Shown here: in pieces, positions 9,593 to 46,205 of the stretch
Numbering within the stretch: position 1 is the stretch's first letter
How the letters are laid out: each line of letters opens with the position of its first letter
Assembly (NCBI GenBank): GCA_002269645.1
Contig: NIVC01003394.1
Location: 35,976-99,975 of the forward strand
DNA: 64,000 nucleotides
Source of the DNA: Macrostomum lignano
Lineage: Eukaryota
Reading direction: 5' to 3'
Notes under the pieces: model-generated
Seen by the model: the letters and a program-made list of their open reading frames with translations, nothing else
Databases searched by the model: none
Told to the model about the DNA's origin: nothing
Position numbers and translations under genes: made by a program

Positions 9593-9818
9593 TCAACCGA
9601 GAAAAGCTCCGATGGTGGTGAGAATGGCTTTGCCGCAGGCTGGGCAGGTGCAGAAGCTTCTCGCGCATTTCCGGCAGTATTTCAGGTGCGCGCAAGGCAA
9701 CAAAACGCAGTCGAGGCTTCGCTGACTGCAGTTCTTGCTCATCGGGCTGTCGTCGCAATCTGTTGAAGCCGGGCCGGAGCTTCTGGCCGGCTCCTCGGGC
9801 CTGTAGTCATCTGAATTT
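9593..9818 (-). CDS. IAP-like gene 1, exon 2 (RING-like domain; first Zn ligand is Ser)
   Basis: Acceptor ttttcttactcag|A at 9818 is phase 2, in frame with exon 1. Translation NSDDYRPEEP...DSPMSKNCSQRSLDCVLLPCAHLKYCRKCARSFCTCPACGKAILTTIGAFLG*. This frame is absent from the ORF track. Confidence 0.8.
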
Positions 9819-9977
9819 CTGAGTAAGAAAAAATCGAGGCCATTGATCGTATTGTTGTGTTCTGTACTTTTGTTTCAATGTAAGGGCACCCCGTCCTTCA
9901 GTCTTTGGATGACTCGTTAGTTGTGTGCGTTGTTCCATGCACCTTCCATGTGATTTGTCATTCGGCTTAAGCCTTTG

Positions 9978-10359
9978 CCGAGGTTAATTCCCTCCTCTCC
10001 CAGTTCTCCTTGTTATTAACTTATCACAATTTTCGTGCCGTCAATTGGATTGGCGCTTCTGTGCCTCTTGTACTATTTGCTGTTCACTGCGTTCTGATTG
10101 GCTGGGCTGGGCGGCGGACTCGGTGTTTCCTTTCCCTCCTGGAGGTGTGGTTGGCTGATGCGGGATGGGGTCGGTGGTGGGGTGGTGGGTCTGGGTTGCC
10201 CAACCCTCCCCCTGTCGTTTTGGGTTTTGTCGTGCCATTTGATTGGCTTTTCTCACTTAGCCGGAAAGACGGGTCTTACTGCGAAGTCTCAATAATGAAA
10301 GAAGACCCGCTAGACCTACCGAAGCGTACCGGCGCACTTGTGCCATGCTGCTTTCGTAA
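9978..10359. mobile_element. About 380-bp insertion with an 11-bp TSD inside the intron of IAP-like gene 1
   Basis: TTAAGCCTTTG at 9967-9977 and 10360-10370. Family not recognised. Confidence 0.5.
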
Positions 10360-10644
10360 TTAAGCCTTTGTTACTAATTACATGAGTGCGTGCTGCTCTG
10401 TTCATTGTTTCGGTTGCCTAGGGGTTCGAAGAGCCCATGTGTCCGGACGCTCACCCCGTAGGCTAGTAGGGATCCTGGTATACAGCACTACGACTGTCTA
10501 TATCTGTATCTAAATATCGCCCAGCACAGATGAAATATTTGAATCGCTGAGGCTAATCTAATTTGTTGCATAGTGTTAAAGATACCTAGACCTTGAAAAA
10601 GGTTTTAACACTAAAAGTCGAAAACGTATCATGTTAGAAATTAC

Positions 10645-11372
10645 CTCAAGCAGTTGATGCGCTCGGTTTGTGCAGGTGTGGCTACGCACCAGCTGGCAGC
10701 TGCCTTCACCAAATCTGCGGTCCAGGAACCCAGCGTGCGCAGAGCATCCGGTATGCCGTGAATCACTCTGATGAGGTCTCCCGGCTGCGTCAATTTCAAG
10801 TCACTGCCTGCCGCCTGCTTCAAAACCATGAGTTTCAACAAGGACAGGACGACGTCTCCTTCGGAAAAGCCGTACGACTTCACGTGTCCAACGATGGGGT
10901 CAAGAAGAGCTGATAGAAGCTGGCCGATCAGTTTTTCGTGTTTTTTAGCATCAGCAGCAATTTCAGCGTTGGGCGGCTTCTTGTCAATGAGCTGCAGCAA
11001 TTGAAGCAGCTTGCAGTTGGGCTGGTGAAACGATTTCCACTGCTCCAGACGGTCTGTCAGTTTCTCAACTCGGAAGCCGCAGTGACAGCAACTGGCGCCC
11101 CAACTGCCATCGAAATGAAACCCCTGCTCGGCCACCTTTTCTGCTGCAGTTGCTTCTATAATGCCTTTGAACGACTGAAGACGGCGATTAAAGATAATCT
11201 GATCCGGTCTGTTTGATGTGCCGATTATAAGTAGTAGATAACCGGCCAGAACCAAATTCCAAACTCTATTTTCTGCCCCTTGAATAGACTTTTTAGCCTG
11301 TTCGGCTGAGAGTAGCGGGATGGTCAGGGTCTGAATATTGGTTTGGTTGCTAGATTGACTGGCGCGGGCCAT
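10645..11372 (-). CDS. IAP-like gene 1, exon 1 (BIR-like + UBA-like)
   Basis: ATG at 11372 (MARASQSS) downstream of acceptor ccttcag. Motifs FNRRLQSF...AEQGFHFDG..ASCCHC...HQPNC (BIR-like) and DPIVGHVKSYGFS...PGDLIRVIH (UBA-like). Donor AG|gtaatt at 10644. Spliced product 317 aa. Confidence 0.8.
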
Positions 11373-13695: not shown

Positions 13696-14141
13696 CGAGA
13701 TTCCATTCCCATATAGTAAAAAGGACGTCTCCATGTGTGGGTAGTCTAGATATAAAATTCTAGCAGAAGTCTGTTTCAGGCTATCTGACAGTCGCTAAGT
13801 CACACTATATAGGCAGGTACATTGCACAGTATATAGCGGCCACAAAGTTGACAATTCTTCATATCGCTGACGCACACTTGGCAGAACTTCAGGTGAGCGC
13901 ACGGCAGCACGATCCGATTGCGTTGGCGACTGCGGCACTGAACACACTGCGGGCTGTCATCGTCTTGAAGCAGTGGATTGGCGTGCGTTACATCTTGCTC
14001 ACTGCAATCGGGTTTTGTTCAAGGGGAATGTTTGAGAGGGTTGCGTGCAGCAATCACATCAAATCGAAGCAGACAGCTTAGACTAATATGTTATTAAATT
14101 TCCTCAGATAGGAGTTTTTAAACACCCGTGAACTAGCTACT

Positions 14142-15856
14142 GGCTGGCGCCCCTGGTGCTGGCGCCCCTGGTGCTGGCGCCCCTGGTGCTGGCGCCCCTG
14201 GTGCTGGCGCCCCTGGTGCTGGCGCCCCTGGTGCTGGCGCCCCTGGTGCTGGCGCCCCTGGTGCTGGCGCCCCTGGTGCTGGCGCCCCTGGTGCTGGCGC
14301 CCCTGGTGCTGGCGCCCCTGGTGCTGGCGCCCCTGGTGCTGGCGCCCCTGGTGCTGGCGCCCCTGGTGCTGGCGCCCCTGGTGCTGGCGCCTCTGGTGCT
14401 GGCGCCCCTGGTTCTGGCGCCCCTGGTGCTGGCGCCCCTGGTGCTGGCGCCCCTGGTTCTGGCGCCCCTGGTGCTGGCGCCCCTGGTGCTGGCGCCCCTG
14501 GTGCTTGCGCGTCTGGTGCTGGCGCCCCTGGTGCTGGCGCCCCTGGTGCTGGCGCCCCTGGTGCTGGCGCCCCTGGTTCTGGCGCCCCTGGTGCTGGCGC
14601 CCCTGGTGCTGGCGCCCCTGGTGCTGGCGCCCCTGGTGCTGGCGCCCCTGGTGCTGGCGCCCCTGGTGCTGGCGCCCCTGGTTCTGGCGCCCCTGGTTCT
14701 GGCGCCCCTGGTTCTGGCGCCCCTGGTGCTTGCGCCCCTGGTGCTGGCGCCCCTGGTGCTGGCGCCCCTGGTGCTGGCGCCCCTGGTGCTGGCGCCCCTG
14801 GTGCTGGCGCCCCTGGTGCTGGCGCCCCTGGTGCTTGCGCGTCTGGTGCTTGCGCGTCTGGTGCTTGCGCGTCTGGTGCTTGCGCGTCTGGTGCTTGCGC
14901 GTCTGGTGCTTGCGCGTCTGGTGCTTGCGCGTCTGGTGCTTGCGCGTCTGGTGCTTGCGCGTCTGGTGCTTGCGCGTCTGGTGCTTGCGCGTCTGGTGCT
15001 TGCGCGTCTGGTGCTTGCGCGTCTGGTGCTTGCGCGTCTGGTGCTTGCGCGTCTGGTGCTTGCGCGTCTGGTGCTGGCGCCCCTGGTGCTGGCGCCCCTG
15101 GTGCTGGCGCCCCTGGTGCTGGCGCCCCTGGTGCTGGCGCCCCTGGTGCTGGCGCCCCTGGTGCTGGCGCCCCTGGTGCTGGCGCCCCTGGTGCTAAAGC
15201 CCCTGGTGCTAAAGCCCCTGGTGCTAAAGCCCCTGGTGCTAAAGCCCCTGGTGCTAAAGCCCCTGGTGCTAAAGCCCCTGGTGCTAAAGCCCCTGGTGCT
15301 AAAGCCCCTGGTGCTAAAGCCCCTGGTGCTAAAGCCCCTGGTGCTAAAGCCCCTGGTGCTAAAGCCCCTGGTGCTAAAGCCCCTGGTGCTAAAGCCCCTG
15401 GTGCTAAAGCCCCTGGTGCTAAAGCCCCTGGTGCTAAAGCCCCTGGTGCTAAAGCCCCTGGTGCTAAAGCCCCTGGTGCTAAAGCCCCTGGTGCTAAAGC
15501 CCCTGGTGCTAAAGCCCCTGGTGCTAAAGCCCCTGGTGCTAAAGCCCCTGGTGCTAAAGCCCCTGGTGCTAAAGCCCCTGGTGCTAAAGCCCCTGGTGCT
15601 AAAGCCCCTGGTGCTAAAGCCCCTGGTGCTAAAGCCCCTGGTGCTAAAGCCCCTGGTGCTAAAGCCCCTGGTGCTAAAGCCCCTGGTGCTAAAGCCCCTG
15701 GTGCTAAAGCCCTGGTGCTAAAGCCCCTGGTGCTAAAGCCCCTGGTGCTAAAGCCCCTGGTGCTAAAGCCCCTGGTGCTAAAGCCCCTGGTGCTAAAGCC
15801 CCTGGTGCTAAAGCCCCTGGTGCTAAAGCCCCTGGTGCTAAAGCCCCTGGTGCAAA
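14142..15856 (+). repeat. GC-rich 15-bp minisatellite (CTGGTGCTGGCGCCC and variants), about 113 copies in homogeneous blocks
   Basis: Blocks: ctggcgccc (14.15-14.83 kb), cttgcgcgt (14.83-15.07), ctggcgccc (15.07-15.19), ctaaagccc (15.20-15.85). Confidence 0.95.
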
Positions 15857-17927
15857 GGTGCTCTGAAGATTGGCCCAGTCATCTAATATCTAATATTTGG
15901 AAAGCTCGGTTTAAATCTGATAGCGGACTCATATAATGGACAAAAATCTGTACATGTTGGTTAAATGCAAACTCAAAAGCATAGAGCAATAATACACGTA
16001 ACTCGTAGTTACTACGACTTTAACAGTTGAACCGCAGCAGAGCAGCAAAAGCAGCATCTGTCGAACTTTGAAGCCACCGAGTTAACAAAAATCCTATAGG
16101 CGGCCTGCCGACCTCCTTAGCATCAGCGATGTTGCTTAATCAGAATGCATCCTATTGGCACGAGTACGCTGGATCAATGGCGAGTTTTGACTTTTACCGT
16201 GTTTTGTTTCAGTTTAGCAACTAAAAACGATGGCATAAATGAATTCGATATTAGTTTTTTAGGGGCTGTGTGCACCCTGGCGCACTTTAAGCGACATTGT
16301 CACACAACCGGCGAGAGGCATTACTGCTTATTCCGCCGACTGCCCTGAGCAGGCACACAAGCGCGCGGATACGCACGCAGTCATACCCACAGGCGCGCAC
16401 TCACATAGGGGTGTACAGCGGCCCTGACTTTATTTATCGTTAGGCATGTACACTTCACTGTGCCTTGGGGTATGGATTCCAATTTAGCCCCAAATTCATG
16501 TGACTGCACTTGGAATCGAGCCTGGGCCGCTGGCACATGAGAGCGCCGCACCACACCACTGGTTGTTATTGCTTCCCCAAACAACAAAAGGTGTTATTGC
16601 TCATATTTAAAATTATGATTACTATTAATATTTTTAAAATACGTCCTGTGTGTTGGCACGCAGTTAGTGACTTGCACTTCCGACTGAACTGTTGAATCTA
16701 TCGACGGTCTGCATGGTGATGTTGCTGACTTCTTCAAATCTAATCAGGGTACGAGGCGAAAATCCGATTTGCATGCTGGTGTATACAGAATTTCTTCTAC
16801 CTGAACAAAAAAGAGTATACAGGGTAGATTTCGTTTCCGTTTTATACATTGATCAGATCGAAGCCTTACTTTGGGCTCAATTCCGTAGCCTAAGCTGACG
16901 TCCCGCGAGCAGTCAATTTAGTTCTGAATGTTGAAAAACAGTCTGAGAGTCTCTGAGGTTCTATGGCCAAAGTGTTGCATAACGCTCTAATCAATTTGAT
17001 CCTGCGAGCAGTAAAATTCACACAATCTTTTTAAAATCTATGTACTGTAGATCAGTTATCATGCATCCCAGGGTCTAACACGACAACGCAACACAACACA
17101 ACACAACGCAACAAGGCAATGCAATGCGGAATAACACAACAGAATAGGAACCATCATGCTATAGTCAGTTTCGAAGGTTATCAAACTCAGAGAATCGGTA
17201 GGCCAGTGATGCAGCGGTGAAGCTGTAGGCTGTATAGCCAATCATCATTTCACGATGCCAACCTCCGCATTTTTCAATGCTTGCAAGATCAAGGAGATGA
17301 AGTAACGCTAACACGTCTTCATCCTGCAACTTCTTGGGACTGTCTGCCACCTTTTGGTGTACGATATCGGCGTTCAGTTATCTGGTACCGTCTTCTGATT
17401 GAATCGACTGTCCGGATCTTCAAATTCCGCCACTGAGCAATTGCCGATGGCCTGTATGATCAAGAAGTACCTTTCGTCCCCGATCTTATCGTATGAACCG
17501 CGTCCTTCGAGCAGTTGCTTTTCAGCAGTGACGAAACTTTCGCTGCTCTCCGAATCGCTCATTCCAGCACGGGCTCCGAACAAAGTCAGTCTATGGGTCT
17601 CTGACAGTCTGTGGCTTGAGCGAAATCAAGTGCTCCCAGGAACATATCATTGCTGTCCGGTAAATCGGGTGGGAACCATGGATGAAGGAAGGACGGATCC
17701 TTTTCTATTCCTTCATCCATGGTGGGAACATGATTGGAACGAAACGACAGTTCTGGCCATAGAACCCTAGGTGCCTCTGTGAATCCGTGTGGACTTTTAC
17801 CTTTCAGATTAAATCCACTGCTCGCAGGACCGAATTGAGTGGGAGTGGTATATTGCAGCAAAGAACAAAGCACAAGCAAAAAGCAGAGTTAAAGCACAAA
17901 TTCGATCGAGCAAACAAATACAGAATC

Positions 17928-18791
17928 TTACGGCATCGTAGCTCCAAAATTGATATTCGACACATGGTTTCCGTTGTTAATACGAGCAGCAACCACTTGC
18001 TCAGGTACTCGATCGGTGGTTCCCAGACAGCTCGAAAGATCTCGCTGCAGCAGGTCTCTGAATGAGCCTCTACCAGCCAATGCTTCTCTCAAGAATGACA
18101 CCAGCTCAGGCGACAGAGAGTGCAAGATCTGAATTAAGTCTCCAGGTCTCAGGTCTGAGCTTTTATCCGCTGGACAGAAGGCGTAGTTATTTATTGCCAG
18201 TGTCACGCCGTCCTCCGGGAAGCCGTACGATTCAACCTGGCCAATCAGTTGTCCGTTCAAAAGCAGCTCAAAGAGTTTTCGCAGTTTAGTCAAAAGCTTT
18301 TCAACTCGGGAAGCGATTTCAGCCATCATCACGGATAGTTCAACATTTAGAAGTCGGATCAGTTGATGCAGACTGCACTCTGGCTGCTGGTTCGCGTGGC
18401 ATTCAGCGGGCTCGCAAGCAGTCAGATTGTCCGCGTGACCTCCGCAGTGGCAGCAGCTGGCACCTCCAAGTCCATCGCTGACAAATCCGTGCCTCGCCCA
18501 ACGCTCCGCAGTTTCAACATCAACAAAGCCGTTACCAGAGAATGAGCGCAGACGATTTTCATAGCTCAGATTGGCTGGGCTGACGGATGCAGCTAAAATA
18601 GTCAATAAGTTACCCAGAACATAAACTCGCAGCCTCGGGTTCGCATCCGGTGCCAATTGCACCTTTTGCTCACTTGGATTTGTCTTTTCATTTTGTTCCG
18701 ATTGGGGAATTATCTTTGGCAGCACAGTATTTACCAAAATGTTGTTTTCTTCGTTGGCCGTCGATGCTCCGTTGTGGTTGTAGTTGGACAT
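17928..18791 (-). CDS. IAP-like gene 2 (BIR-like + UBA-like, no recognisable RING)
   Basis: ATG at 18791, 9 nt after acceptor ttttgcag. Motifs YENRLRSF...ARHGFVSDG..ASCCHC-x15-H-x6-C and VESYGFP...RPGDLIQILH. Confidence 0.78.
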   Translation of the reverse strand: MSNYNHNGASTANEENNILVNTVLPKIIPQSEQNEKTNPSEQKVQLAPDANPRLRVYVLGNLLTILAASVSPANLSYENRLRSFSGNGFVDVETAERWARHGFVSDGLGGASCCHCGGHADNLTACEPAECHANQQPECSLHQLIRLLNVELSVMMAEIASRVEKLLTKLRKLFELLLNGQLIGQVESYGFPEDGVTLAINNYAFCPADKSSDLRPGDLIQILHSLSPELVSFLREALAGRGSFRDLLQRDLSSCLGTTDRVPEQVVAARINNGNHVSNINFGATMP

Positions 18792-19750
18792 TTTGGCCGC
18801 CTGCAAAAAATAAAAATAGTAATGCAAAAAACCAATTCTGTCTAAAATTCTAATTTATTTCTGTAAACTGAAATATCCGTTACGAACTTTTTTGTTCGAT
18901 GCGAACACGCTCGCTGAGTTTCCAGGAAATCAGCGGAAACTGTCGGACCTCCCAGCGCATAAATCTGAATCCTATAGCTGACTGGTCTGGCTTCAATCAA
19001 ACTATTGTTTACATGTGTCTAATGACGAATTCACAATCAATCAATCAATTCGTGCACCAAAACGTACCAATAAAACACATTAGAATCCGTAAGGGTAAAA
19101 AGCCTGTTTGTTTCTGGCAAGAGTTGAGCAATGCGCGAGAGCCGATGTGTTTTAGATGTTTTTGTCTCGTACGGCTAAAGAGGTTTATCTTTATGCCTTC
19201 GAGTATTTCGCTAGCATTGAATTGGCATATGCACATGGCTGGCCGCAGCAAGGACAGTCATTGTACACGGAGCCTTCACAATCTTTAACACGTCAAGAGA
19301 GTACAGCGATGTGCAAAACCCATGAAAAAAAGTAATGCAGGAGCGTAAGCTTGATGAAATGCTTATATACAAGCTGTTTAAACAATTTTTACAACAAGGA
19401 TACAAGAGTAGATGCCACTTCAGTACAAGAACAGCCCGTAGTATTAGGCATATTATTAGCAGTGACGCCGTGCTTGTATTGTAATTGTACACCGCAACAT
19501 TGACAAGCTCAAATATTCTGTGGATCCGTGATTTTCAATCCATTACAGGCGTTGAGATTATTGTAGAGTACTTTTGCACCTGTGGTAGTTATCTACTTCG
19601 TAATAAACTAAAGTTGTTCTACGCGAAAGGCATTGCATTTCTCTTTTTATGCAATATGGTGAAATTATATCCGATTAATGCTTCAGAAAAATAGTTTTCA
19701 AGCATACATTTACTTCACCTAATTTTTTATTACACCTGCTCTAATGGGTA

Positions 19751-19919
19751 GATAGATGTGCAACCGACAGCTCAGCCGCAGCTATTACGCGGAGCATCTG
19801 AAGACTGCTCACGGCTGTTCAGTCCAAGGACTGTGGGGGGGGGGGTCGCCACCCAAATCCTCAATTACCCCAGCTGTACTGAAGCAATTCAGAGTTAAAA
19901 TTCTTGCTCAAGAACACAA
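19751..19919 (-). mobile_element. 5'-truncated copy of the tRNA-derived SINE
   Basis: Reverse complement matches the 3' half of 6106-6427 (ctcagccgca, ctgttcagtccaag, caattacccagct, cttgctcaag). Confidence 0.75.
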
Positions 19920-20627
19920 ATTCACCACATACTAGTACATATCAAAACAATATGATGCTTACCTTTGCGATAAAATTCCTCACTATGATTCCTGATGTTC
20001 ACTCAGATTGGCATAATGGTACGTACGGTGGTATGCTAGTTTTCTGCTGTTAACTAGGAACCAACCTTGTATGCATGCAAATTTTCCAATTCACATCGTA
20101 AACACAGGGTGTGCGCCCATAAGCGTACGTTTTTACTTGTGTGCGCAATGCAAGTACACTGGTATACGGGCGTAGCCAGTACAGGGTATCCCAGCTAATG
20201 TACGATGCCAGTGCACCAGACACTTTCCTTCAAATTTCAGACAATATACATACTAGGTACTACTCTGATAGATAGCTTCTCAGTAGCTACTACATCTATC
20301 GTTTAATTAAATTCCAATGCCACTTCTAAAGACGTCAGATAGACCTCACTTTTGGAATTTAATTTGTTTAAAAAAATTTTGAACAAACTCCACGGTAATT
20401 AAATGGAGCTACGTTTTTTCAAGATGATATTTATAAACAGTACATATTTCTTTTTTCTTATTGACATGTGTACATGTCATTCGTACGAGTACATGAAATT
20501 TGTACATGAAGTAGCTGTGGAATATTGACCAATATTAATTGCTATTGTGTCGGTGTGAAAGTATGCCGCATATACAATACAAGTATCAACTGTACAAATT
20601 GAGCGTCAAAGAGAGCATTCGGTTTAA

Positions 20628-21638
20628 TCACAATGCCAAAACCGCAGTCAGCATGCTCAAGATCTCAATCCCACAGCGGGGACATGAGCTCAGGAGATTG
20701 AGACATTCGCGGCAGGCGATGAGGTGAGTACAGGGAAGGCAGACTCGGTCGCGAGGTCGTTCGTAGCACTCGATGCACCGCCAGTTCGTTCCCGAATCCT
20801 CGGCCTCCGTCTGCCTCCGTCCCGCAGAAGCAGTTTTCTCACCCGACTGATCCTCTGGCGGCTGGCAGACTTCATCGCCTTCGGTCTCCAAGGGCACGGG
20901 TGTTGAGTCCGTTGGAATTCGGAGCCGGTCTTGAACGATGGGTGACGCTAGGAGCAGGTCTAGCACGTCAGGAAGCTCGTCCAAGTCAGTCCGCAGCTCG
21001 TGGATCAAGCCAATGATTTCGCCTGGCTGCTTAGCGCCAGAAGCTTCAGGGCCACCAGCCAGCAGTAGCTTAAGCTGGACAAAGATGACTTCATTGGCCG
21101 AAAATCCAAAAGACTCCACAAATTTAGTTACAGGATCTCTGAGTGCAGCTAAGAGTCTTCTGATGAGCTGCTCCAGCCGCTCTGCATCGGCGATGTACTT
21201 AACGTCGTCTACTTCGGGTCTTGCCTTGTTGAGAAACTGCCAAAGGCGTAGCATAGCACAGTGAGGTCGTCGGTTCGAGTGCCAGTCTCCAGGATCGCCA
21301 TTCACCAACGAGTCAACTCGCGCACCGCATAGAATGCAGCTGACACCGCCGAGTCCATCGCTGTAGAATCCGCCATCCGCCCATTGGTGAGCAGCGGCTT
21401 CGTCCACGAGACCTTCGAAGGAACGCAGTCGACTTGTGAAGCTGAGCTTGTCCTGGTAGGGTGAAGATGATCCTAGAATGACCAGGAGACTGCCGACCAG
21501 AAAGTTTCGAATCGTCTCGGAGCCAGACTTCCAGCGCTCCTTCAGTTCTGTCAGCCGGGAGTTTGAGAACAGACAAGAGCTTACTCGAAGCTCATTGACG
21601 TCTTTCGGAACCTGTAGCTTTTGAAGACCTGAAATCAT
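20628..21638 (-). CDS. IAP-like gene 3, intronless BIR-UBA-RING protein (336 aa)
   Basis: BIR-like FTSRLRSF...ADGGFYSDG..VSCILC-x15-H-x6-C. UBA-like DPVTKFVESFGFS...PGEIIGLIH. C-terminal IAP-type RING CIEC...LPCTHLIACREC...CPRC. Confidence 0.88.
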   Translation of the reverse strand: MISGLQKLQVPKDVNELRVSSCLFSNSRLTELKERWKSGSETIRNFLVGSLLVILGSSSPYQDKLSFTSRLRSFEGLVDEAAAHQWADGGFYSDGLGGVSCILCGARVDSLVNGDPGDWHSNRRPHCAMLRLWQFLNKARPEVDDVKYIADAERLEQLIRRLLAALRDPVTKFVESFGFSANEVIFVQLKLLLAGGPEASGAKQPGEIIGLIHELRTDLDELPDVLDLLLASPIVQDRLRIPTDSTPVPLETEGDEVCQPPEDQSGEKTASAGRRQTEAEDSGTNWRCIECYERPRDRVCLPCTHLIACRECLNLLSSCPRCGIEILSMLTAVLAL

Positions 21639-22515
21639 AATGTTACCTTGAAATAATATATAAAGATAAAACCCTCCATTTTAGACATATCTCATTAGCT
21701 TCATTCGAAATTGCCTGCAATTCCAAGGGCTAGCCAAGTTTGTTCCTCGGAAACGCCAAGGAAATGCCTTTGAAATCGGTCTAATAGTTTAATAACTGCC
21801 TGAAGTTCCACTTAATAAGCGCACTAATGGGTTAAGTGCTTTGCTAATGAACTGTGCAGTACATGAACTTGCTATGCAAGCATTTGACAGTTTCCTGAGC
21901 AACAAGAATCTGCACATTTCTACCCTCATACACTAAAGCAGTTATATCGATTGGAATTGTACACTATATATAGCTATTTCAGGTGTAAACGTTAGTACAT
22001 AAACAGTAAAGTAAATAAATTGCTTTAGTACTTCAGTAGATTAGAATATTTATACCTTATTACAGATTTTTCGTTCCTAGTAGCAAGGCACAAACTTTTT
22101 TAAATAGCGCCGCTGTTTTTGCTTTGCCTTCAAAGCGTAGAGCGAGTGTACAACCTACACGGTACTATCCACGGTGTGCATGGGCGCCTCTGTACATTTT
22201 GCATTGTAAGCTTTTAACTGTCATGGCGACAACGCTCTTGCAATTTTGGCAGTAACTATTCACTATAGAATCAAGCAGTGAGCTAGAAAGTGTACTCAAG
22301 CTGAATGGTAGAATGATGCTATTAGAGCATCATATCGCTGCAGTATCCTCGATGTCTCAGAGAATGATTGTTATAAGTACATGTACAGCAGTTAGATTAC
22401 ACGAATGAGTCAGGAATTATGTTCTATTTTGCTTATTTATCCCTCTTTTGCCCCGGGCGATAGTTTATGTCACGCTTGTTTTTATTTATTTTCATCGGTG
22501 AAAAATCTCTCAGTC

Positions 22516-22723: not shown

Positions 22724-22769
22724 CTGTAATAGTTAATAAGGTAGCATAAAAACATTGTTTTGAGCATGA

Positions 22770-22990: not shown

Positions 22991-23092
22991 TACGAGCGTA
23001 CCCCCAGAAAAAAAAGTACCCCGATTAAAATTCGCTGGGGTGGGGCAACACTGGCTGTCAATTCTGCGAAAGGAAATTTGCAAAAGTCTAAC

Positions 23093-32503: not shown

Positions 32504-32568
<65 letters not shown>

Positions 32569-33386: not shown

Positions 33387-34589
33387 ATGAAAATAAAAGG
33401 CTTCTTTCTTCTGGCCTGTGCATCGATTGCGCTAATCATTGTTGCTAATCTCTTTTATAGGAAACAAACTGCCCCACCTTGGAGTCGTATCTTTTCCTGG
33501 CGAAAAAATTGGACCGCTTCAAAGACACATCTCATTTGAGGCGAAGGCCTGACCACTGCGGAGTCGCTACCAACGCTGAGCGATGTCGAAATTAGTTGGG
33601 GTTCATGTCACGTCGACTTCATGAACCCCAGCCTGCGGCACCGGCTGTGTCAGCAGACGCCGGCCTACCAGTTAGTTAGGGGCAAGTTTCCCCTGTGCGA
33701 GCTGAACAGGGACTTACCGCAGCCGCTGTAAACCATTGTCAGGCAAGGGTCCCCTGTGGCCAATGTGACCCGAGCGATGGGTGGCCCTATTCACCTTCGC
33801 TATGTCGGGATGTCGCTATTCACCTTCGGCAAGGAGGACTTAATTTCCGGCCATATGCTAAAAAGCGGCGCATGGGAAACTGAGTTGATTCGGACCATGC
33901 TCAACCTGTTAAAGAAGTTTCCGACAAACTCTGTGACTTTCCTCGATATCGGCAGCAACCTTGGCATCTACAGCCTGCAGGCCAGAGAGCTTGGGTATCC
34001 CGTGGTGGCCATCGATGCGAACATCCGCACGCTGGTCAGGCTGCAAATGTCAGCGAAGCGGCTGAACTTGCTTGACGACAAGCTGAGGCTCTTCTGGGGC
34101 TTCATCGGCGACGACGTGGCGGTCAAGCGGATGAGTTGGGACGCTGACGACGTAGATTGCAACGTTGGAAGCGCCTCAGGCGGAATGGCTGACTGGAAAC
34201 AGCAGGTCAAGAAGTCAATCGAGGACACGATTCCCGTGACGACTGTGAAAGCGGACGAGCTTCGAGCGCACATCGGCACCAAGAATGTGGTCGTCAAGAT
34301 GGACATCGAGTCCGGTGAGCACCTGTTCATGAAGACTGGCGAGAGACTGTCCAGCGAGCTCAACATCATGGCGCTGCAGATGGAGTTCTGGCGAAAAAGC
34401 GGTCGCCCACAGCAATCGAACAAATATTTCGAGTTTTTGACGAGCTTCATGACCTCAAGGAACTTCTCTCTGCTGTCCATGAGTAGCTTCCGAGTGCAGA
34501 ACATCTCTACATTCAGCGAATGGGACGGACTGTGGGTCAGGAACGACTTTCTGGATCAAGTTGCAAGAAAGGTTGAACAAACTCGCTGA
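33387..34589 (+). CDS. FkbM-family SAM-dependent methyltransferase with an N-terminal signal anchor; two in-frame stops upstream of the catalytic ORF
   Basis: FLDIGSNLGIYSL (motif I), VVAIDAN and VVKMDIESGE are FkbM/Methyltransf_21 motifs. The same frame runs from MKIKGFFLLACASIALIIVANLF (33387) through TGA 33537-39 and TAA 33729-31. Confidence 0.75.
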
Positions 34590-35652: not shown

Positions 35653-38600
35653 CCACGGTGCAGATAAATGCCGCTACCTTCTCGTGGTGAGAGCGGAGAG
35701 CCGCGCTTAACTGCTGCGGCGGCCAAATGCGGCAGGACCAAGCGAGGGCAGCGAAGCGCGCGTCGGCGAGTCGAACGCCGTCGCGAGCGAAACTGGCGAG
35801 GTCGGCAACGTGGCGCCGCCCGTCGAGCTGCTGCTGCGCTGGCCCAATTGGATCTTCCGGGTGGCGCCGGGGACCATGAGGCTCACCAGCACCGAGCCCC
35901 AGCCGTACCAGAGGGCACGCTTCGGGTCGGGACGCTGAACTGCCGCACTCTCAAGGCCACATGGCGGAGAGGGCTGCTGGCGAGGCTAGCGCTCGACCTC
36001 AGCTGTGATGTCATCGCACTACAGGAGGTGTCTATCAGAGCCGACCCCGGACTTCACTGTGAGGACCTGGGCGCCGGTTGGACACTCTGGTACACCTCAG
36101 CGGATGAGCGAGGCCGTGGAGGAGTTGGAGCGCTGATCGGACCGAGGCTGCAGCAGAGCTGTCGCTGCGTCTCCCTGTCTTCTCGGCTGCTTCGGGTCGA
36201 CGTCCGGCTTCGCGGCCGGAACGCCCGCCTGTTCTGCGCGTACGCGCCGCCTGCTACCCGCTCCGATGAGGCTCAGGCCTTCTTCGAGCAACTCTCGGTG
36301 CGGGTGGAGGAGATGGCGCAACGTGACACAGTGGTCATTCTCGGAGACCTGAACGCAGTTCTGCGTAGGTCCGAGCGATCGCTGTTCGTGACAGCGCGCG
36401 AGAACGGCAACACCGGAGCGCTAGAGGACTTCCTGGAGAGACAGGACATGGTGTCGGTCAACACCAGATTCCGCAAGTCACCGGGCAGGCTCGCGACCTT
36501 CGTGGGCTGCAAGCGGAGGCGGCGGAACGCGCGCGGCCGGAACGCTACGCGGAGGCTGGCACAGCTCGACCACGTGCTTGTGCGCTTTCGTGAGCGCCGC
36601 CGCGTCACCAACTGCCGCACCATTACGCCGCTGGCTCTGCGGTCCGACCATCGGCTGCTCATATGCGACCTTCGGCTTCGGGACCCGCTCTACCGTCCGC
36701 CAAAGCGGCCACCGCGGCGCTACTACGCGCGCTCAGGGACGCCGAGACGCGACGTCGCTTTGCCGGTGCCTTTGTCACTGCGCTGGGCGACAAGCGTGGA
36801 GGAGCCGAGTACGCGGAGGTGAGCGCTGCAGTTCGAGCCGCTGCGGAGCAAGCAGTCCCGCTGATGCGACCGGCCCAGCGCGGGCAGCCAGTCTGGCAGG
36901 ACGACCCCGCGATCGACGAAGCGAGGGAAGATCTGGAGAGGCTCCGTCTGAGTGGGCGGCAAACTCGCGAGGCGGAGGAGGCTCTGGCGGCTGTCTACCT
37001 GCAGCGGCAGCAGTCCGCTGTCGATGACGCCATCCAAGCCGTCTCTGCCGCAGGGCCCGATGCCAGAGGGCGCGTGGCCTGGTCCGTCATCAACACTCTG
37101 ACGGGGCGAAAGCGGCGCATTGCGCTCAACCTGGCAGGCGACACTCCGGATGAGCGCAGGAACGAGCTGCGCGAGTTCTTCGCCGCCATTGTCAACGCGC
37201 CGCCCCCTCCGCTTCCAGAAAATCTGAGGCTGCCGCCGGAGACGCCGTTGCCGGCGGAGGAGAGCTTCAACGTTGCCCCAGTCAGCACAGCCGACGTTGT
37301 GAAGTTCGCTCGGCAGTCGCCGGGCGGCAAAGCGCTTGGTCCGGACGAGGTGCCCACCGAGGCGCTGCGGATCCACTGCGTGGCCACTGAGGTCGCCAGA
37401 GTGATGAACCACGTGCTTTCCGGTGAGGTGGCGCCAAACGAATGGACCACGGCGCACATCGTCGCCATTCCAAAGAAGCCGGGCACCACCAAGCTCGAGG
37501 AGCATCGAGGCATCTGCCTACAGTCCTGCGCCGCGAAGCTGTTCAACCGCATGCTGCTATCGCGGCTACAGCCTGTGCTGGACCCGTACCTGCGGCCTGA
37601 GCAGAACGGATTCCGGCCCCATCGCGGCACAGTGACGCAGATCCTGGCTCTTCGGCGAGTCATCGAGGAGGCGCGCATCCGCCAGTTGACCCTGATCCTG
37701 ATCTTCGTCGATTTCAGGAAGGCCTTCGACTCGGTCGTGAGGGACGCGCTCCCAGAGGTGCTCCGTGCGTACAACGTGCCAGAGCTGCTGATTTCTGCTG
37801 TCATGGCGCTGTACCACGGCACGACGGCTGCTGTCTCAACACCGGACGGCCTATCGGATTTCTTCGAGACGTCCTCCGGGGTGCTCCAGGGAGATAAGCT
37901 AGCGCCGTTCCTATTTATTCTGGTGCTTGACTGGGTGCTACGGACTGCTCTGCCTTCCAACGACGACAGCTTCCTGCTGCGGCGACGCGTGGGTCGACGC
38001 CAACCGGAGAGACGGCTCAGCGTGCTTGGCTACGCCGATGACCTCGCCCTGCTGTCCTCGACCGTCGAGGGCGCCCAACGACAGCTGGATAGGCTGGTTG
38101 CCGTTGCGGCGAGCGTCGGCCTGGTGGTCAACACGCAGAAGACCGTCGTGCTATGCGTGCCGGACGACACCGAGGCTGCAATCTTCTGCCGAGGCGCTGA
38201 CGGACAGGCGAGTGAGCTTCCAAGATGTCAGCAGTTCGTCTACCTCGGCGGTCTGGTTCCCGACGTTCGCGAGGATCTGCGGCGTCGCCGAGGACTTGCC
38301 TGGGCTGCCTTTCGTTCTATAAGGTCAGTCCTGCAGTCCGAGGCCCTACCGGACCGCCAGAGGGCGGCGCTGTTCCAGGCGGTGATCGAAACCGTCCTGT
38401 TATACAACGCCGAGACCTGGACGCTGACAGACTCGCTCGAGGCTCAAGTCGACGCGGCGCACGCTGGCCTGCTGCGCGCCGCCTTCAAGATCGGCAACGA
38501 GCGAGTCACCAACACGGCGCTCTATCATCGCGCCGGCCTGGCCCGTCCTAGCGATCTGCTGCGCCGTCGGCGACTCCAGCTGGCAGGCCACGTCATCCGC

Positions 38601-38833
38601 GCCAAGGCCTACTGTCCGGAGCCGGTGCAGGAGGTGCTGCTACTTACGTTGCAGGCACCCTACCGGCGGGGACAGGCGAGGACACGGCGCTACGTCGACT
38701 GTCTGCTGGCTGACGCCGGCGCCCCGGACTCTGCCGGCGGTGCGGCCTTTGTTCGCGCCCAAGCTTCGAAGCGTGCCATCTGACGTTGCTTTTGCGATCC
38801 GGCAGCGTACTCTGCTGCTGCTGCTGCTGCTGC
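35146..38833 (+). mobile_element. Near full-length RTE-like non-LTR retrotransposon (APE endonuclease + RT; 1-nt frameshift near 36727) including a 5' tandem array
   Basis: APE motifs GTLNCRTL, DVIALQEV, ILGDLNA, QLDHVLV, SDHR. RT motifs VDFRKAFDSV, GVLQGDKLAP, GYADD. (CTG)n tail. TSD TATGTGTGTC at 35136-35145 / 38834-38843. Confidence 0.95.
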
Positions 38834-41274: not shown

Positions 41275-41890
41275 TCACAATGAGCCGCAGCCATTCACAC
41301 CGGCCAGGCACCACAGGGCCTCCACATCTACATCCCTAGCAACTTCCGCGAGTCCGTCACCAGCCCCCTCCCACCGTTGCAGCTCAGCGACAATGTCGCC
41401 GCATCTCGGCGGCGCCGGCATCGACAGACGGCAGGCGGCCAGCAGGCAGGAGCGGCGAGGAAAGCCGAAGCTCTCGGCCAGGCAGATGGCGGTCCGGGTG
41501 CCGGCTGACAGCGGGCAGATCTTCACGATGCCAGCTGGCACAGAGCAGTTCAGGACGGCATCGAGCAGCTGGCTGAAGCAGCAGCTCTCCAGATGACGCT
41601 TGCTCCCCAGGGGGGACACGCCGCAGGAGAAGCAGGCCACCTTGTTGCTGTTGCTGCTGTTGTTGTTGCTGGCGCCATCAACAAATCCCGGTTGGCGCCA
41701 GAATCCAGCAGCTGCCAGCTCCCGATGCTCCCAATTGATGCTGCTGCTCGAGCTGCTGCTGTTGGCCAGGTAACTGCCGAATGAGCTCAAACGGTTCTCA
41801 AAGCTCAAAGCCTGCAGACAGTCGCTACGGCAGGTGACCAGCAGTAGAATGGCCAGACTCGCTGCGCTCGCATTTTGGCGGAAAAATGAA
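41275..41890 (-). CDS. IAP-like gene 6 (divergent BIR-like + UBA-like; no native ATG or RING found; may be a pseudogene)
   Basis: Motifs LSFENRLSSF...ELAAAGFW...KVACFSC-x9-H..CC and LAESFGFP...RCGDIVAEL. The only in-frame start lies inside the upstream SINE. Confidence 0.65.
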
Positions 41891-41936
41891 AGGATTGAAG
41901 GATCAAATGAAAAAAATGAATTCAGAATTTTGATTA

Positions 41937-42161
41937 GTGCAACTGCGTACGGCTGTTCAGTCCAAGGACTGGGGGGTTGCCACACACAACCTCAATTACC
42001 CCAGCTAATGCTGGCACCCATTTTACAGCTGAGTGAACTGAAGCAATGCAGAGTTAAGTGTCTTGCTCAAGGATAAATATTCCTTTGAGATGTATAGAGA
42101 ATCGAACCCCCGACCTTTCAGTCGTGAGTCCGACGCTCCTATCACTGGGCTACAACCTCCA
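41937..42161 (-). mobile_element. tRNA-derived SINE
   Basis: Reverse complement has gtagcccagtgatagg (A box-like), gggttcgattc (B box) and the shared core. Confidence 0.85.
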
Positions 42162-42868: not shown

Positions 42869-42980
42869 CGTACTATAAAGCCGTCGTAGCGTAAGTTCGA
42901 TCGTAAGTCGGAACTTTTATATATACTGGGGAGATAGGAGCTAAGAACGATCTTAACTTACAAAATGGCTTTATAGAACG
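42869..42980. mobile_element. Small MITE-like inverted-repeat element
   Basis: CGTACTATAAAGCC / GGCTTTATAGAACG inverted pair. TSD not established. Confidence 0.45.
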
Positions 42981-44349
42981 GGCACAGTGCACTATACTCG
43001 TAGTTATAGAAGCTTTTGGCATAAAATTCCATGGATTTTCCGTGGCCTTGCCTTCTATTTATATTCCGAGAACATTGGCTCGTACATTCGCTTGTTAAGC
43101 TATACTCGTACAACTGTTACCGTGCAGCCGGTGAAGGAAAGAAAAAATTATTCGTACAACAATTGCGTACAATTGACACTGAACAAAACTACCTTTCATT
43201 CAAAGTAGGAACCATACAGGCTGCTCATTCTGTGCTGCTGGTAAATGAGTCATTCCTATGCAGTTTGACGGAATACGCTTCACAGACCATATAGAATATA
43301 GACTGCGAATCTTTGGGGCCTTCCCAGGCACGTTGTGGGACAAAAAAGCAACACAAAAAATGGTCCTTCCACAAAGCCCCAACTTCGATCGATATGTGGG
43401 ACAAAAAATGGGCAAGTGCAAGTTTTCAAGCTTGAAATTTACTTATTATAAAGAGTTTAAAACCACAGGGAGGCAAAATAAATGTAAATAAGATTTGAAT
43501 TGAATTGATTGAATTGAATTTAAATTAAATTGAATTGAAATTGAATTTGATTTGAATTAGAATTTCCTTGCAAAAATATCCTGCAAAAAACCAATTAAAG
43601 CATTCTTATCCATGCAGCCAGCTTCTATAGTGTATCAAAAAGGAGAAAAGCGCCAGAAAATGTGGCAACTATTGCTGTGCTCAGGGAGCTGAACAAGAAG
43701 CGCCAGCGACTAAGGGCGCGGTCAAAGTCACTGACAGAAATTGTGAAAGTACTGTAGGCAAAGAATATTGTGGATGAAGCTGCAGCATCCCGTCTGAATT
43801 AGATTCGCATTCAGCAGCTGTTAGCACAGGTATTGAGTCAAGAAAGTTATGAGCATTTTTTACATCAGAATTCGCATGAAGAAAATTGCGAAAGACATGT
43901 CGCACTTATTAAGAAAGGCAGGAAGGAGACAAAAGCTGCTGCGCACATCAATTTTTCTTAATCTGAAAGCTTGGACTTTGAAGGACATTTCGGGGTAATT
44001 TAATTTAATTTCATTACTTTTATGTATTTGGTTTTCGTGGCGTTTTATGTAAAAAATAAGAAAAAAGGTATCTCAATTGCATGTGTCCAATAGGAGCACA
44101 ATGGAAAAGAGGCCCGCCCTGTACCACATATCGATCGAGCTGGGGTGGGTGAGAGGGACCAGTTTCTTATGGGGGAAAATGGCCCACTTTTTTCTTCACT
44201 TTACTGGTCTATATTCTATATGGTCTGTGCTGCGCTTAGATGAGGCCTGTTCTCATCTCATGGCAACCACCTCCAAGATGCAGCGATAAAGGTGACTCAA
44301 CAACTCAACAATCTAAACATAACCGTACTCCGGTGCTGGCGCTCTGGTA

Positions 44350-45190
44350 CTCGAATCAAATGGCGCCCCTCACTCGAATCAAATGGCGCCCCTCACTCGA
44401 ATCAAATGGCGCCCCTCACTCGAATCAAATGGCACCAATTCACTCGAATCAAATGGCGCCCCTCACTCGAATCAAATGGCGCCCCTAACTCGAATCAAAT
44501 GGCGCCCCTCACTCGAATCAAATGGCGCCCCTCACTCGAATCAAATGGCGCCCCTCACTCGAATCAAATGGCGCCCCTCACTCGAATCAAATGGCACCAA
44601 TTCACTCGAATCAAATGGCGCCCCTCACTCGAATCAAATGGCGCCCCTCACTCGAATCAAATGGCGCCCCTCACTCGAATCAAATGGCGCCCCTCACTCG
44701 AATCAAATGGCACCAATTCACTCGAATCAAATGGCGCCCCTCACTCGAATCAAATGGCGCCCCTCACTCGAATCAAATGGCGCCCCTCACTCGAATCAAA
44801 TGGCGCCCCTCACTCGAATCAAATGGCGCCCCTCACTCGAATCAAATGGCGCCCCTCACTCGAATCAAATGGCGCCCCTCACTCGAATCAAATGGCACCA
44901 ATTCACTCAAATCAAATGGCACCAATTCACTCAAATGAAATGGCACCAATTCACTCAAATGAAATGGCACCAATTCACTCAAATGAAATGGCACCAATTC
45001 ACTCAAATGAAATGGCACCAATTCACTCAAATGAAATGGCACCAATTCACTCAAATCAAATGGCACCAATTCACTCAAATCAAATGGCACCAATTCACTC
45101 AAATCAAATGGCACCAATTCACTCAAATGAAATGGCACCAATTCACTCAAATCAAATGGCACCAATTCACTCAAATTAAATGGCGCCACT
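44350..45190 (+). repeat. 23-bp minisatellite changing from CTCACTCGAATCAAATGGCGCCC to TTCACTCAAATGAAATGGCACCAA-type units
   Basis: Directly visible, with a polar change in unit sequence. Confidence 0.95.
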
Positions 45191-45462
45191 CAATCAACAG
45201 AGCGCTTTTTCCTTCTCAAAGAAAGACTCTTGGCACTTAGATTTTGCAAATTACATTACCGAAATTAAATCATAAGTCCGTCAGAAGTGTTGAGAGTTTC
45301 TAGGAAAGTGCAATACATTTTCTGAGCTGAAGAGCACGGCTGCATGGCTTGTGTGTCGTTTGTTAGTAAAAAAACACTTGACAGAATTTATTGCAAAATT
45401 GTACTACGTATGACAGCTCCAACATGTACACATGCTTTTTCACCAATGCGGCTTGCAGTTGG

Positions 45463-46205
45463 TCAGTTAAAAAAGGCCGCAACACCCACAGATTCGTTAG
45501 GCGACCTTTCAGCAAGAATTTGAACAATTTGCACCTGCAGCAGGCTGGGGTGCACCTGGTCGGAGCATTCGTGCGCCAGCTCGATAAGGTCGCCGGCTCG
45601 ATTCGGCATTGAGCCGCCGTTCCGCATGAAGTGGCGAGTGGCGGCGAACTGCAGCAGCTCCGGGCTGAGCCCGAAGGTCTGCGCGAACTGGATTGAAGTG
45701 CTGGACTTCAGGTCTGCGTGCAGGCGCCTCAGGGCGCGGTCGAACCTGATAATCATTGATGATTGGGCTGATAATCACTGATAATCATTTGAGGTGTTGT
45801 GGCTGATAAATCACAAATTAATCAAGGCACTCTCCTGTCGTGATCAGCAGCGACATCAGCTAACAGGATTTTATCGTCGCTTCCAGCAGCCAGTCGCAGC
45901 AGTTTCTGCAGGTAGCAGCGCGGCCTCTGATGCAGGTGCTGCTGCAGCGGGTCGGAGCTCCCAGACTGCAGTCTCACTGAGCAGTGGAAGCAGATCAGTC
46001 CGCCACTTGCGTCATAAAACAGGCCGTTGGACGCGAGCTGCTCAGCAACCGCCAAGCTGTTGACCAAAGAGGCTGGACTCGAGCTGAAGCTGCTTATCCG
46101 GTCCTGATGAAGCATAATTTGAGGCTGAGTTGAGGCGGCCAGTATCAGAACGATGCAGCCTGCGGGATCAAAAGTGTTCGGTTGTTGATTTTTCAGTTGC
46201 CCCAT
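45463..46205 (-). CDS. IAP-like gene 7 (BIR-like + UBA-like) split by an 89-nt AT-rich interruption (45746-45834); no RING found
   Basis: ATG 6 nt after acceptor aaccag. Motifs HQDRISSF...LASNGLFYD...ICFHC-x14-H-x6-C, then in another frame FDRALRRL...FAQTFGLS...RAGDLIELAH. Confidence 0.7.

Follow-up and report, generated by a model that had tools for sequence, protein, structure and literature searches.

A tandem array of IAP-like genes

In the window, a 64-kb stretch of DNA from Macrostomum lignano, a flatworm capable of regeneration, seven IAP-like paralogs (c1–c7) lie in tandem and co-oriented on the minus strand, between positions 9593 and 46205. A preliminary description of this DNA had proposed such an array, and it is borne out by the ORF list, by tblastn searches of the window with each copy and by a family HMM. 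The copies lie at, or a few bases away from, the positions where they were first noted. When the HMM was run on all six-frame ORF pieces, the c1–c7 loci scored 78–328 bits (E 1e-23 to 4e-99), and no eighth family copy was found in the 64-kb window at E <= 1. The ORFs are open in all seven copies. Protein identity between the paralogs is 20–39%; in the alignment of the seven proteins (A2) c3 shares 25–35% identity with the six other copies, and in alignment A1 c1 shares 16–35% with the others, the minimum belonging to the short c7b fragment. A second, diverged and collinear copy of the whole array is present on NIVC01000019.1, with 88–95% nucleotide identity to the window.

The BIR and GFS-type motifs that had been described as shared are seen in the alignments of c1–c7. 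Every copy contains R-L-x-S-F ... G-F ... C-x2-C ... H ... C, followed by (E/K)S(F/Y)GF ... (R/Q)PG(D/E)(L/I)I ... H. The full architecture consists of a family-specific N-terminal helical segment, a BIR, a UBA-like three-helix module, an unstructured linker and, in c1–c5, a RING. The same linear arrangement is seen in human ILP-2 and in the BIR3-UBA-RING half at the C-terminus of XIAP/DIAP2-like IAPs. A C-terminal RING is present in five of the seven copies, and the family HMM found none in c6 and c7 over the window ORF pieces.

Structures of the individual genes

In c1, c2 and c4 an intron precedes the RING exon, each time with GT-AG borders and in phase 2. The two exons of c1 (9593–11372), assigned from sequence and splice sites, are exon 1 (11372–10645; 216.7 bits with the family HMM), which encodes the N-terminal helices and the BIR-like and UBA-like domains, and the RING exon 2 (9800–9593; 82.1 bits), separated by an intron at 10644–9801. 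The c1 RING has Ser in place of the first zinc-ligand Cys. In c2 (13800–18791) exon 1 (18791–17932) encodes the BIR-like and UBA-like domains, and a complete C3HC4 RING is encoded 3.9 kb downstream by exon 2 (14001–13800), beyond a 3930-bp intron (17931–14002; GTAAGA...TTGCAG) that includes a minisatellite at 14156–15936. The 353-aa product of this model agrees with that of the gene at the sister locus L001 (15058–20585), which has the same length, start and stop.

Both c3 (20628–21638) and c5 (24325–25338) are single ORFs, of 336 and 337 aa. The former encodes the N-terminal helices, BIR-like and UBA-like domains, linker and a complete RING; its protein is absent from the public protein sets searched. 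The latter, with BIR-like and UBA-like domains and a complete RING, matches the annotated M. lignano protein P0001 exactly. Between them lies c4 (22516–23793), with a first exon (23793–23093) encoding a BIR-like domain with a shortened Zn loop and then the UBA-like domain, an intron (23092–22724) filled by a minisatellite, and a RING exon (22723–22516). The spliced c4 model is 100% identical to UniRef A0A1I8HW95 (P0153) across all 302 aa.

The two RING-less copies lie at the far end of the array. The start codon of c6 (41275–41985; 130 bits with the family HMM) is uncertain; its BIR-like domain, in which poly-Ser/Asn is inserted and the Zn loop is shortened, is followed by the UBA-like domain, and its sister copy (P0017/PAA93984) stops at the same place. 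The first reading of c7 (45463–46205) is revised here, as the gene consists of two exons in different frames: exon a (46205–45835), with the top-scoring BIR of the array, and exon b (45745–45463), with the UBA-like domain. The 89-bp intron between them (45834–45746) has a GA donor in the window instead of GT, and the product would be 217 aa if spliced. At the sister locus the donor reads CAG/GTGAGC (exon/intron), and the called gene encodes 252 aa.

The BIR domain

Single-sequence searches with Pfam BIR (PF00653, cut-off 22.9 bits) gave matches in all copies, at 13.9–27.1 bits. The scores of c1–c6 (13.9–20.1 bits; c1 14.3–15.4) fall below the cut-off, and c7 (25.5–27.1 bits) is the sole copy to pass it. 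A profile built from the seven paralogs was also run against PDB chains: dozens of XIAP, ILP-2 and DIAP1 BIR chains are matched, the best of them XIAP BIR3 (33 bits, ~3e-7), and cIAP1 (2.5e-13) and NAIP (4e-12 overall) are also found. In the AlphaFold2 model of c3, residues 20–240 have a pLDDT of 70–90 and the BIR region one of 80–90. The best 50 Foldseek matches of this model in the PDB are all BIR3 domains of XIAP, ILP-2 or cIAP1 (probability 1.00, target TM-score 0.53–0.69, E = 2e-3 to 2e-2). The BIR first described has therefore held up: the predicted structure of c3 has the BIR fold, and the recognisable BIR profile argues for membership of the IAP family.

Zinc-ligand spacing was compared with the IAP BIR reference, C-x2-C-x16-H-x6-8-C. 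It is near-canonical in four of the seven copies (x15/x6 in c2 and c3, x17/x6 in c5, x14/x6 in c7) and deviant in c1 (x17/x3, with the His displaced), c4 (x6/x3) and c6 (x9/x3-4). The loop from C-x2-C to His varies between 6 and 20 residues across the family, compared with 16 in XIAP, and is reduced to 6–9 residues in c4 and c6. We also compared the peptide groove, in an alignment for which the zinc ligands and the D-P motif served as anchors. The reference residues were XIAP W310, E314 and W323, the conserved groove residues of type II, IBM-binding BIRs. Their equivalents are non-aromatic and non-acidic in all copies (in c3, for example, L, G/N and R/Q), and are unconserved in family members elsewhere in the genome too. 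A type II BIR like those of XIAP BIR3 and ML-IAP is not supported, nor is the earlier XIAP/ML-IAP-type label, which implied a Smac- or caspase-binding BIR.

The RING domain and C-terminal tail

Four copies exceed the 27-bit cut-off of Pfam zf-C3HC4_3 (PF13920), namely c2 (33.6 bits), c3 (34.3), c4 (36.0) and c5 (36.3), and c1 (26.7) lies slightly below it. The best PDB RING matches of the paralog profile are the RINGs of cIAP1/2 and XIAP (~1e-10). In the full-length AlphaFold model the RING region is of low confidence (pLDDT ~57–63). The RINGs of c2–c5 have a complete C3HC4 ligand set and, judged from sequence, are of the IAP type. This type had been recognised from the outset, and the Pfam and PDB matches support it; the number of copies with a RING had to be corrected to five, the c2 RING exon at 13800–14001 having been overlooked.

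In the C-terminal tail used by dimeric IAP RINGs, position -3 is aromatic. Such a residue is found in c1 (AFLG), c2 (AYIV) and c4 (AYMP), in P0004, P0007, P0012, P0015, P0161 and P0070, and in the majority of family members from other parts of the genome. It is absent from c3, where a non-aromatic residue replaces it and the protein ends in AVLAL, and from c5 (ATIC), where the replacement is Thr.

The middle domain

Profile–profile comparison by hhalign of 13 family mid-domains with 45 canonical IAP UBA regions gave a probability of 88.5% (P = 2.7e-6) over 56 columns. The alignment covers all three helices and places ESFGFS on MGFS, and 21 reversed or shuffled controls scored 12.7 or less (P >= 0.028). 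When applied to canonical IAPs, the family HMM recurrently matched the MG(F/Y) segment that follows the last BIR and precedes the RING. The AlphaFold model of the domain (pLDDT 83.8) has helices alpha1 at residues 22–28, alpha2 at 34–53 and alpha3 at 58–72, with the FGFS loop between the first two. However, neither PF21290 (UBA_BIRC2-3) nor PF00627 (UBA) matched any of the 13 mid-domains at E <= 10, the mid-domain profile retrieved no UBA chain among PDB sequences, and Foldseek of this confident model against the PDB returned nothing below E = 1.6 and no UBA. The IAP-type UBA first proposed is thus partly supported, the putative likeness appearing in profile–profile comparison only.

Family distribution, selection and expression

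In an exhaustive family HMM search of 1.84 billion representatives, full-length single-stretch matches came from M. lignano only. The next-ranked matches, from molluscs, ticks, insects, sponges and echinoderms, were canonical IAPs with several BIRs. The alignment of canonical IAPs with the family profile runs as a single stretch from BIR through RING. The close relatives of c1–c7 are all uncharacterised M. lignano proteins; UniProt names them just ‘RING-type domain-containing’.

Between the window and NIVC01000019.1, dN/dS is 0.27 for c2, 0.40 for c3, 0.44 for c4, 0.61 for c5, 0.44 for c6 and 0.18 for c7 (dS 0.07–0.125), or ~0.4 when pooled. Six of the seven pairs are open in both arrays, and splice sites are conserved, as are intron phases; the flanking DNA shows ~9% neutral divergence and many indels. 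Two lesions were seen, a premature stop codon in the sister copy of c4 and the change of the splice donor from GT to GA in c7 of the window; together with the dN/dS of up to 0.61, they indicate weak constraint on some copies. Selection on the array is purifying but relaxed, with occasional gene death. The lineage-specific birth-and-death expansion suggested at the outset is supported by these lesions and by the restriction of close relatives to M. lignano. The GenBank Mlig_3_7 gene models were built from RNA-seq transcript assemblies (PMC5730564), and these transcript-derived models include c5 of the window contig as well as c2, c4, c6 and c7 of the sister array.

Discussion

The genes c1–c7 are new, cryptic members of the IAP family, produced by a gene expansion of a known kind. 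We consider it likely that they are seven paralogs of a Macrostomum-specific, strongly diverged IAP branch, the RING copies acting as E3 ligases with non-canonical BIR partners. The RING-bearing copies are probably active ligases. The RING of c1–c5 would recruit E2~ubiquitin, with the tail aromatic of c1, c2 and c4 matching the tail of dimeric IAP RINGs, whilst the UBA-like module would bind ubiquitin chains and the BIR would select the partner. The c6 and c7 proteins would then serve as non-catalytic BIR-UBA adaptors or competitors. A part in immunity, stress or regeneration, as suggested at the outset, is a hypothesis. Since the groove residues are replaced and the loop length ranges so widely across the family, BIR specificity is probably non-canonical: the partners would probably not be canonical IBM-bearing caspases or antagonists, and would probably differ between paralogs.

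If c1–c7 were instead canonical apoptosis inhibitors, their nearest sequence and fold matches (XIAP BIR3, ILP-2 and cIAP1 BIR3) and a domain order equal to that of the C-terminal half of XIAP would fit well. Nevertheless, W310, E314 and W323 are conserved neither in any copy nor in family members elsewhere in the genome, and the groove-forming loop, so variable in length, is largely deleted in c4 and c6; we regard this alternative as unlikely. We give somewhat less credence still to the view that the array consists mostly of decaying pseudogenes that no longer have a function. The degenerate zinc sites of c1, c4 and c6, the missing RINGs of c6 and c7, the two lesions and the high dN/dS of c5 would all suit such decay, yet reading frames have stayed open, throughout the window and in six of the seven pairs in both arrays, despite the divergence and indels around them. 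The pooled dN/dS, the low value for c7, the conserved splice sites and intron phases and the existence of transcript-derived gene models also speak against it.

It is very improbable that the ‘BIR’ is another treble-clef zinc finger of superficial likeness and the proteins generic RING ligases unrelated to IAPs. Six of the seven copies do fall below the Pfam BIR cut-off, UniProt recognises just a RING in the relatives and the Foldseek E-values are modest (~2e-3), but three independent IAP signals (BIR, UBA and RING) occur in the same order along the protein. The BIR profile matches many XIAP BIR3 chains, the best 50 fold matches are without exception BIR3, the hhalign match is specific to the IAP-type UBA, the best RING matches are to cIAP and XIAP, and the family profile covers canonical IAPs from BIR to RING in a single alignment. 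Finally, although redundancy is high in the M. lignano assembly (180–312 Mb duplicated; PMC5730564) and a second copy of the array exists, pairwise protein identities of 20–39% and differing intron and domain content refute the idea that a single gene gave all seven copies as haplotype or assembly duplicates, the redundancy concerning the whole array and not the paralogs inside it.

Comparison with known IAPs

As a diverged IAP branch, c1–c7 most resemble the C-terminal half of XIAP (BIRC4) and ILP-2 (BIRC8). They share the domain order BIR3-UBA-RING, a BIR closest to BIR3 by profile and fold, a middle module that hhalign sets in register with the UBA of XIAP type (ESFGFS over MGFS), a zf-C3HC4_3 RING and, in c1, c2 and c4, the aromatic residue three from the C-terminus. 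In contrast to XIAP and ILP-2, the M. lignano proteins have unconserved IBM-groove residues, a Zn loop of variable length and a family-specific helical N-terminal extension of ~40–60 residues; most copies are below the Pfam BIR cut-off, some are without a RING, and there is no BIR1 or BIR2. ML-IAP/Livin (BIRC7) is likewise small (~300 aa) and has one BIR, after which comes an IAP RING that ends in a C-terminal tail. It has no UBA, however, and its BIR is of the canonical IBM-binding type II, whereas in c1–c7 a UBA-like module is present and the groove is non-canonical.

Type I BIRs (XIAP BIR1 and cIAP BIR1) are without a deep IBM pocket and make signalling-adaptor contacts rather than binding caspases (PMC13159474). 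The missing pocket is a point of likeness, although c1–c7 are closest by profile and fold to BIR3, not BIR1. For flatworms, no adaptor partner is known. Lineage-specific IAP expansions are found in bivalves and other invertebrates (PMC7831173, PMC8917759, PMC13159474), and share with this array tandem duplication, loss of domains (some members being RING-less) and a rapid divergence confined to one lineage. Those expansions, in molluscs among others, have standard BIR signatures, whereas the present array comes from a flatworm and is cryptic by Pfam cut-offs. A 2026 survey states that RING-containing IAPs were lost in Platyhelminthes, naming Schistosoma and Echinococcus and nowhere mentioning Macrostomum (PMC13159474); the M. 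lignano array qualifies that claim.

The array and its gene models

Seven sets of related open reading frames lie on the minus strand between 9593 and 46205, and the seven co-oriented IAP-like genes of the preliminary description were borne out across the whole window: tblastn with every copy returned no loci beyond the seven, while a family HMM run over all six-frame ORF pieces scored 78–328 bits at these loci and gave no further family locus at E ≤ 1 in the 64 kb. The copies, termed c1 to c7, share 20–39% protein identity and, judged by their sequences, are old paralogs. The window is of eukaryotic character, with LINE elements, numerous minisatellites and spliced genes.

Two of the copies, c3 (20628–21638, minus strand; 336 aa) and c5 (24325–25338, minus strand; 337 aa), are single uninterrupted ORFs spanning all domains from BIR-like to RING. 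The RING occupies a separate exon in c1 (11372–10645 joined to 9800–9593), c2 (18791–17932 joined to 14001–13800) and c4 (23793–23093 joined to 22723–22516), all on the minus strand, behind GT-AG introns of 844, 3930 and 369 bp, respectively, with phase 2 common to all three. A minisatellite (14156–15936) is enclosed by the c2 intron, and another occupies that of c4. According to the family HMM, c6 (41275–41985) and c7 (46205–45835 joined to 45745–45463), again on the minus strand, are without a RING. Thus a RING is present in five copies, c1–c5, once the c2 exon at 14001–13800 is joined, and not in four as first described. The c4 model agrees with UniRef A0A1I8HW95 at every one of its 302 aa (100% identity), and the c2 model agrees in length (353 aa), start and stop with the gene call at the sister locus, which belongs to a second array copy. 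In the precise form encoded by the window, the c2 protein was absent from the public protein collections searched, as was the c3 protein on exact look-up, and c3 as a single query in a word-index protein search gave no matches. In these collections c5 is the sole annotated protein from this contig.

Domain content of the copies

The Pfam BIR model matches all seven copies, at 13.9–20.1 bits in c1–c6 and 25.5–27.1 bits in c7, which alone passes the cut-off of 22.9 bits. A profile built from the seven paralogs matched cIAP1 BIR3-UBA-CARD-RING at 2.5e-13, NAIP at 4e-12 and many XIAP BIR3 chains at ~3e-7. An AlphaFold2 model of c3, with the paralog alignment as input, reached a pLDDT of 70–90 over residues 20–240, and its best 50 PDB matches were all BIR3 domains of XIAP, ILP-2 or cIAP1 (target TM-score 0.53–0.69). 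Copies c2, c3, c5 and c7 have near-canonical zinc spacing; the His is displaced in c1, and the loop between C-x2-C and His, which ranges from 6 to 20 residues over the wider family, is mostly deleted in c4 and c6. In an alignment anchored on the zinc ligands, the XIAP BIR3 positions W310, E314 and W323, which form the Smac/caspase peptide groove, are substituted in every member. The loss of this groove for the IBM peptide motif, together with the variable loop, argues for diversified BIR specificities. All members also have an N-terminal helical extension, closing with a short hydrophobic G-x-L-L-x-I segment, for which no counterpart was found outside the family.

The RING of the array copies is, on its sequence, of the IAP type. 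Pfam zf-C3HC4_3 scores 33.6–36.3 bits in c2–c5, and the seven-paralog profile matched the RINGs of XIAP and the cIAPs at about 1e-10. In c1 a Ser stands at the first zinc ligand, and the score of 26.7 bits is marginally below the Pfam cut-off. Dimeric IAP RINGs typically carry an aromatic residue at the third position from the C-terminus; c1, c2, c4 and most relatives have it, and c3 and c5 lack it.

The middle domain, with the consensus (E/K)S(F/Y)GF...RPGDLI..H, had been described as an IAP-type UBA, and here the methods differed. Pfam gave no match to 13 family middle domains, a middle-domain profile found only chance-level SH3 and PDZ matches among PDB sequences, at the RPGDLI motif, and a structure model of this domain alone (pLDDT 83.8) had no Foldseek match below E = 1.6. 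In contrast, hhalign comparison of the 13 domains with 45 UBA regions from canonical IAPs, one XIAP orthologue among them, gave a probability of 88.5% (P = 2.7e-6), with an alignment of 56 columns that spans all three helices and places ESFGFS on MGFS; reversed and 20 column-shuffled controls scored at most 12.7 (P ≥ 0.028). Repeated matches of the family HMM to canonical IAPs also lie on their MG(F/Y) segment, after the last BIR and before the RING. The middle domain is therefore probably a UBA.

Relatives in Macrostomum lignano

An exhaustive HMM search across 1.84 billion protein representatives gave 12,399 matches. The full-length, single-stretch matches at the top came from M. lignano only (P0001, which is c5, P0002–P0004, P0007, P0012, P0015, P0017, P0022, P0070 and P0097), and below them ranked canonical multi-BIR IAPs from scallop, abalone, tick, beetle, sponge and sea cucumber. 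A word-index protein search with a 12-sequence BIR and UBA profile returned two matches only, the index being too insensitive for this family. The M. lignano relatives bear database names such as 'hypothetical protein BOX15_Mlig...' or 'RING-type domain-containing protein', and they are without IAP annotation because most fall under the Pfam BIR cut-off. At least six family clusters lie elsewhere in the genome.

A neighbour-joining tree pairs c7 with P0097, a RING-less protein of another contig (100% bootstrap); c1–c5 form a weak local cluster (45%), and c6 stands beside the P0004/P0161 group (39%). The only well-supported groupings are c7 with P0097, P0004 with P0070, P0161 with P0004/P0070 (97%) and P0007 with P0012. 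The array thus combines copies that expanded locally with representatives of older subfamilies, and, with 45% at c1–c5, the tree does not settle the order of duplication.

The sister array and selection

A collinear copy of the array, from c7 to c2, is present on NIVC01000019.1 of the same assembly (GCA_002269645.1) at 88–95% nucleotide identity; the spans compared were 13700–25730 and 44230–47187 of the window against the two sister loci (1223014–1266710). The coding regions align without frameshifts. Against the sister copies dN/dS is 0.27 for c2, 0.40 for c3, 0.44 for c4, 0.61 for c5, 0.44 for c6 and 0.18 for c7, and dS (0.07–0.125) is near the intergenic substitution divergence of 0.085–0.094, which indicates purifying but relaxed selection. 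Two lesions show that gene death is ongoing: a TCG to TAG change within the BIR of sister c4, and a c7 donor that reads CAG/GA in the window as against CAG/GT in the sister copy. The RING is absent from c6 and c7 in both arrays, so its loss is old and tolerated. P0151 (UniRef A0A1I8IKD2, 593 aa), a public M. lignano model, joins sister c5 to the C-terminal part of sister c4; this fusion, at the locus of the premature stop, probably arose as an artefact of read-through or of a trans-splicing precursor.

The GenBank Mlig_3_7 models were built from RNA-seq-based transcript assemblies (PMC5730564), and hence c5 and sister c2, c4, c6 and c7 have transcript support. The two array copies differ by about 9% in substitutions, whereas SNP divergence between M. 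lignano subgenomes is 1.9–2.4% (PMC10733133), which leaves two explanations for the pair, an older segmental duplication or a locus of unusually rapid evolution.

Surroundings of the array

The minisatellite density of the window is exceptional. Besides the one in the c2 intron, minisatellites lie at 22740–22990, 27575–28574, 32216–32569, 44292–45240, 47942–49300, 50850–55225, 56339–57988, 59198–61168, 61863–62462 and 62800–63798. Several of them occupy the c2 and c4 introns or directly adjoin a family gene (downstream of c7), and their lengths differ between the two array copies; positions 1–4000, listed with these regions, have strong GC/AT skew. A non-LTR retrotransposon of ~65% GC with Exo_endo_phos endonuclease and reverse-transcriptase ORFs (35668–38783, plus strand) separates c5 from c6, an interval across which the sister array does not align, and a 5'-truncated relative (25749–26905, plus strand) lies directly upstream of c5. 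The c5–c6 interval also contains two genes unrelated to the family, namely a glycosyltransferase-like gene (29907–31806, minus strand; weak Gly_transf_sug DXD match) and an FkbM-type methyltransferase-like ORF (33756–34589, plus strand; weak Methyltransf_21 match), both slightly below the Pfam cut-off, the latter with no entry in the public protein collections searched by exact look-up. Conserved housekeeping-type genes flank the array, namely a ribosomal protein S9/S16-type gene, represented by one of its exons (47689–48021, minus strand), and an Abl-interactor (Abi) gene (58085–61812, minus strand) with an HHR domain, a C-terminal SH3 and minisatellite-filled introns. A short repeated element (46220–46400, 41985–42076, 29423–29461 and 6270–6330), with copies directly upstream of c7 and c6, has translations containing '...WTEQPY...' and a tRNA-like 'GFDSQ' stretch; ARAGORN called no tRNA in this stretch upstream of c7, and the element may therefore be a SINE-like repeat.

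Discussion

The array genes belong, in diverged form, to the IAP family, whose RING ligases control cell death, NF-κB-type immune signalling and stress survival. The preliminary description proposed a role in immunity, stress or regeneration. Most likely, the RING-bearing copies would act as RING E3 ligases, with the BIR recruiting partners and the UBA-like module binding ubiquitin chains, and c6 and c7 may serve as adaptors or competitors. That they are canonical caspase inhibitors fits less well, since both the loss of the IBM groove and the variability of the loop disfavour classical caspase or Smac binding. A graveyard of pseudogenes, for which the lesions in sister c4 and window c7 speak, also fits the array less well, the coding regions aligning without frameshifts under purifying, if relaxed, selection. 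So does a zinc finger other than a BIR, in spite of Pfam scores under the cut-off in c1–c6, given BIR3 matches throughout the c3 model's best hits. Assembly duplicates as the origin of the seven copies are excluded by their low protein identity.

A survey from 2026 that covered 312 metazoan species and required standard BIR signatures reported RING-containing IAPs as lost in nematodes and Platyhelminthes; the flatworms named in its text, Schistosoma and Echinococcus, are both parasitic, and Macrostomum is unmentioned (PMC13159474). The divergence of the M. lignano family is so large that standard BIR cut-offs miss it. The array and the clusters elsewhere in the genome show that BIR-UBA-like-RING genes were kept and multiplied, in cryptic form, in an early-branching free-living flatworm, at least Macrostomum. 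Literature searches for the Mlig gene identifiers and for IAPs of Macrostomum yielded no specific report. Because M. lignano serves as a transgenic model in stem-cell and regeneration research, these candidate regulators of cell death or ubiquitin can be tested there directly.

We regard it as rather improbable that the family is a flatworm-specific, diversifying recognition repertoire, in which the 6–20-residue BIR loop would offer a variable surface for binding foreign or selfish-element proteins and the UBA-like module and RING would give a ubiquitin output. If true, it would account for the ~9% array difference against the subgenome average of ~2%, and its analogues would be innate sensors of the NAIP or TRIM type. 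In architecture the array genes correspond to human ILP-2 and to the BIR3-UBA-RING half of XIAP/DIAP2-like IAPs. As a set of diverged IAP genes, the array corrects and refines the view of IAP evolution, and the kind of system is not new: lineage-specific tandem IAP expansions are well documented, above all in bivalves (PMC7831173, PMC8917759).
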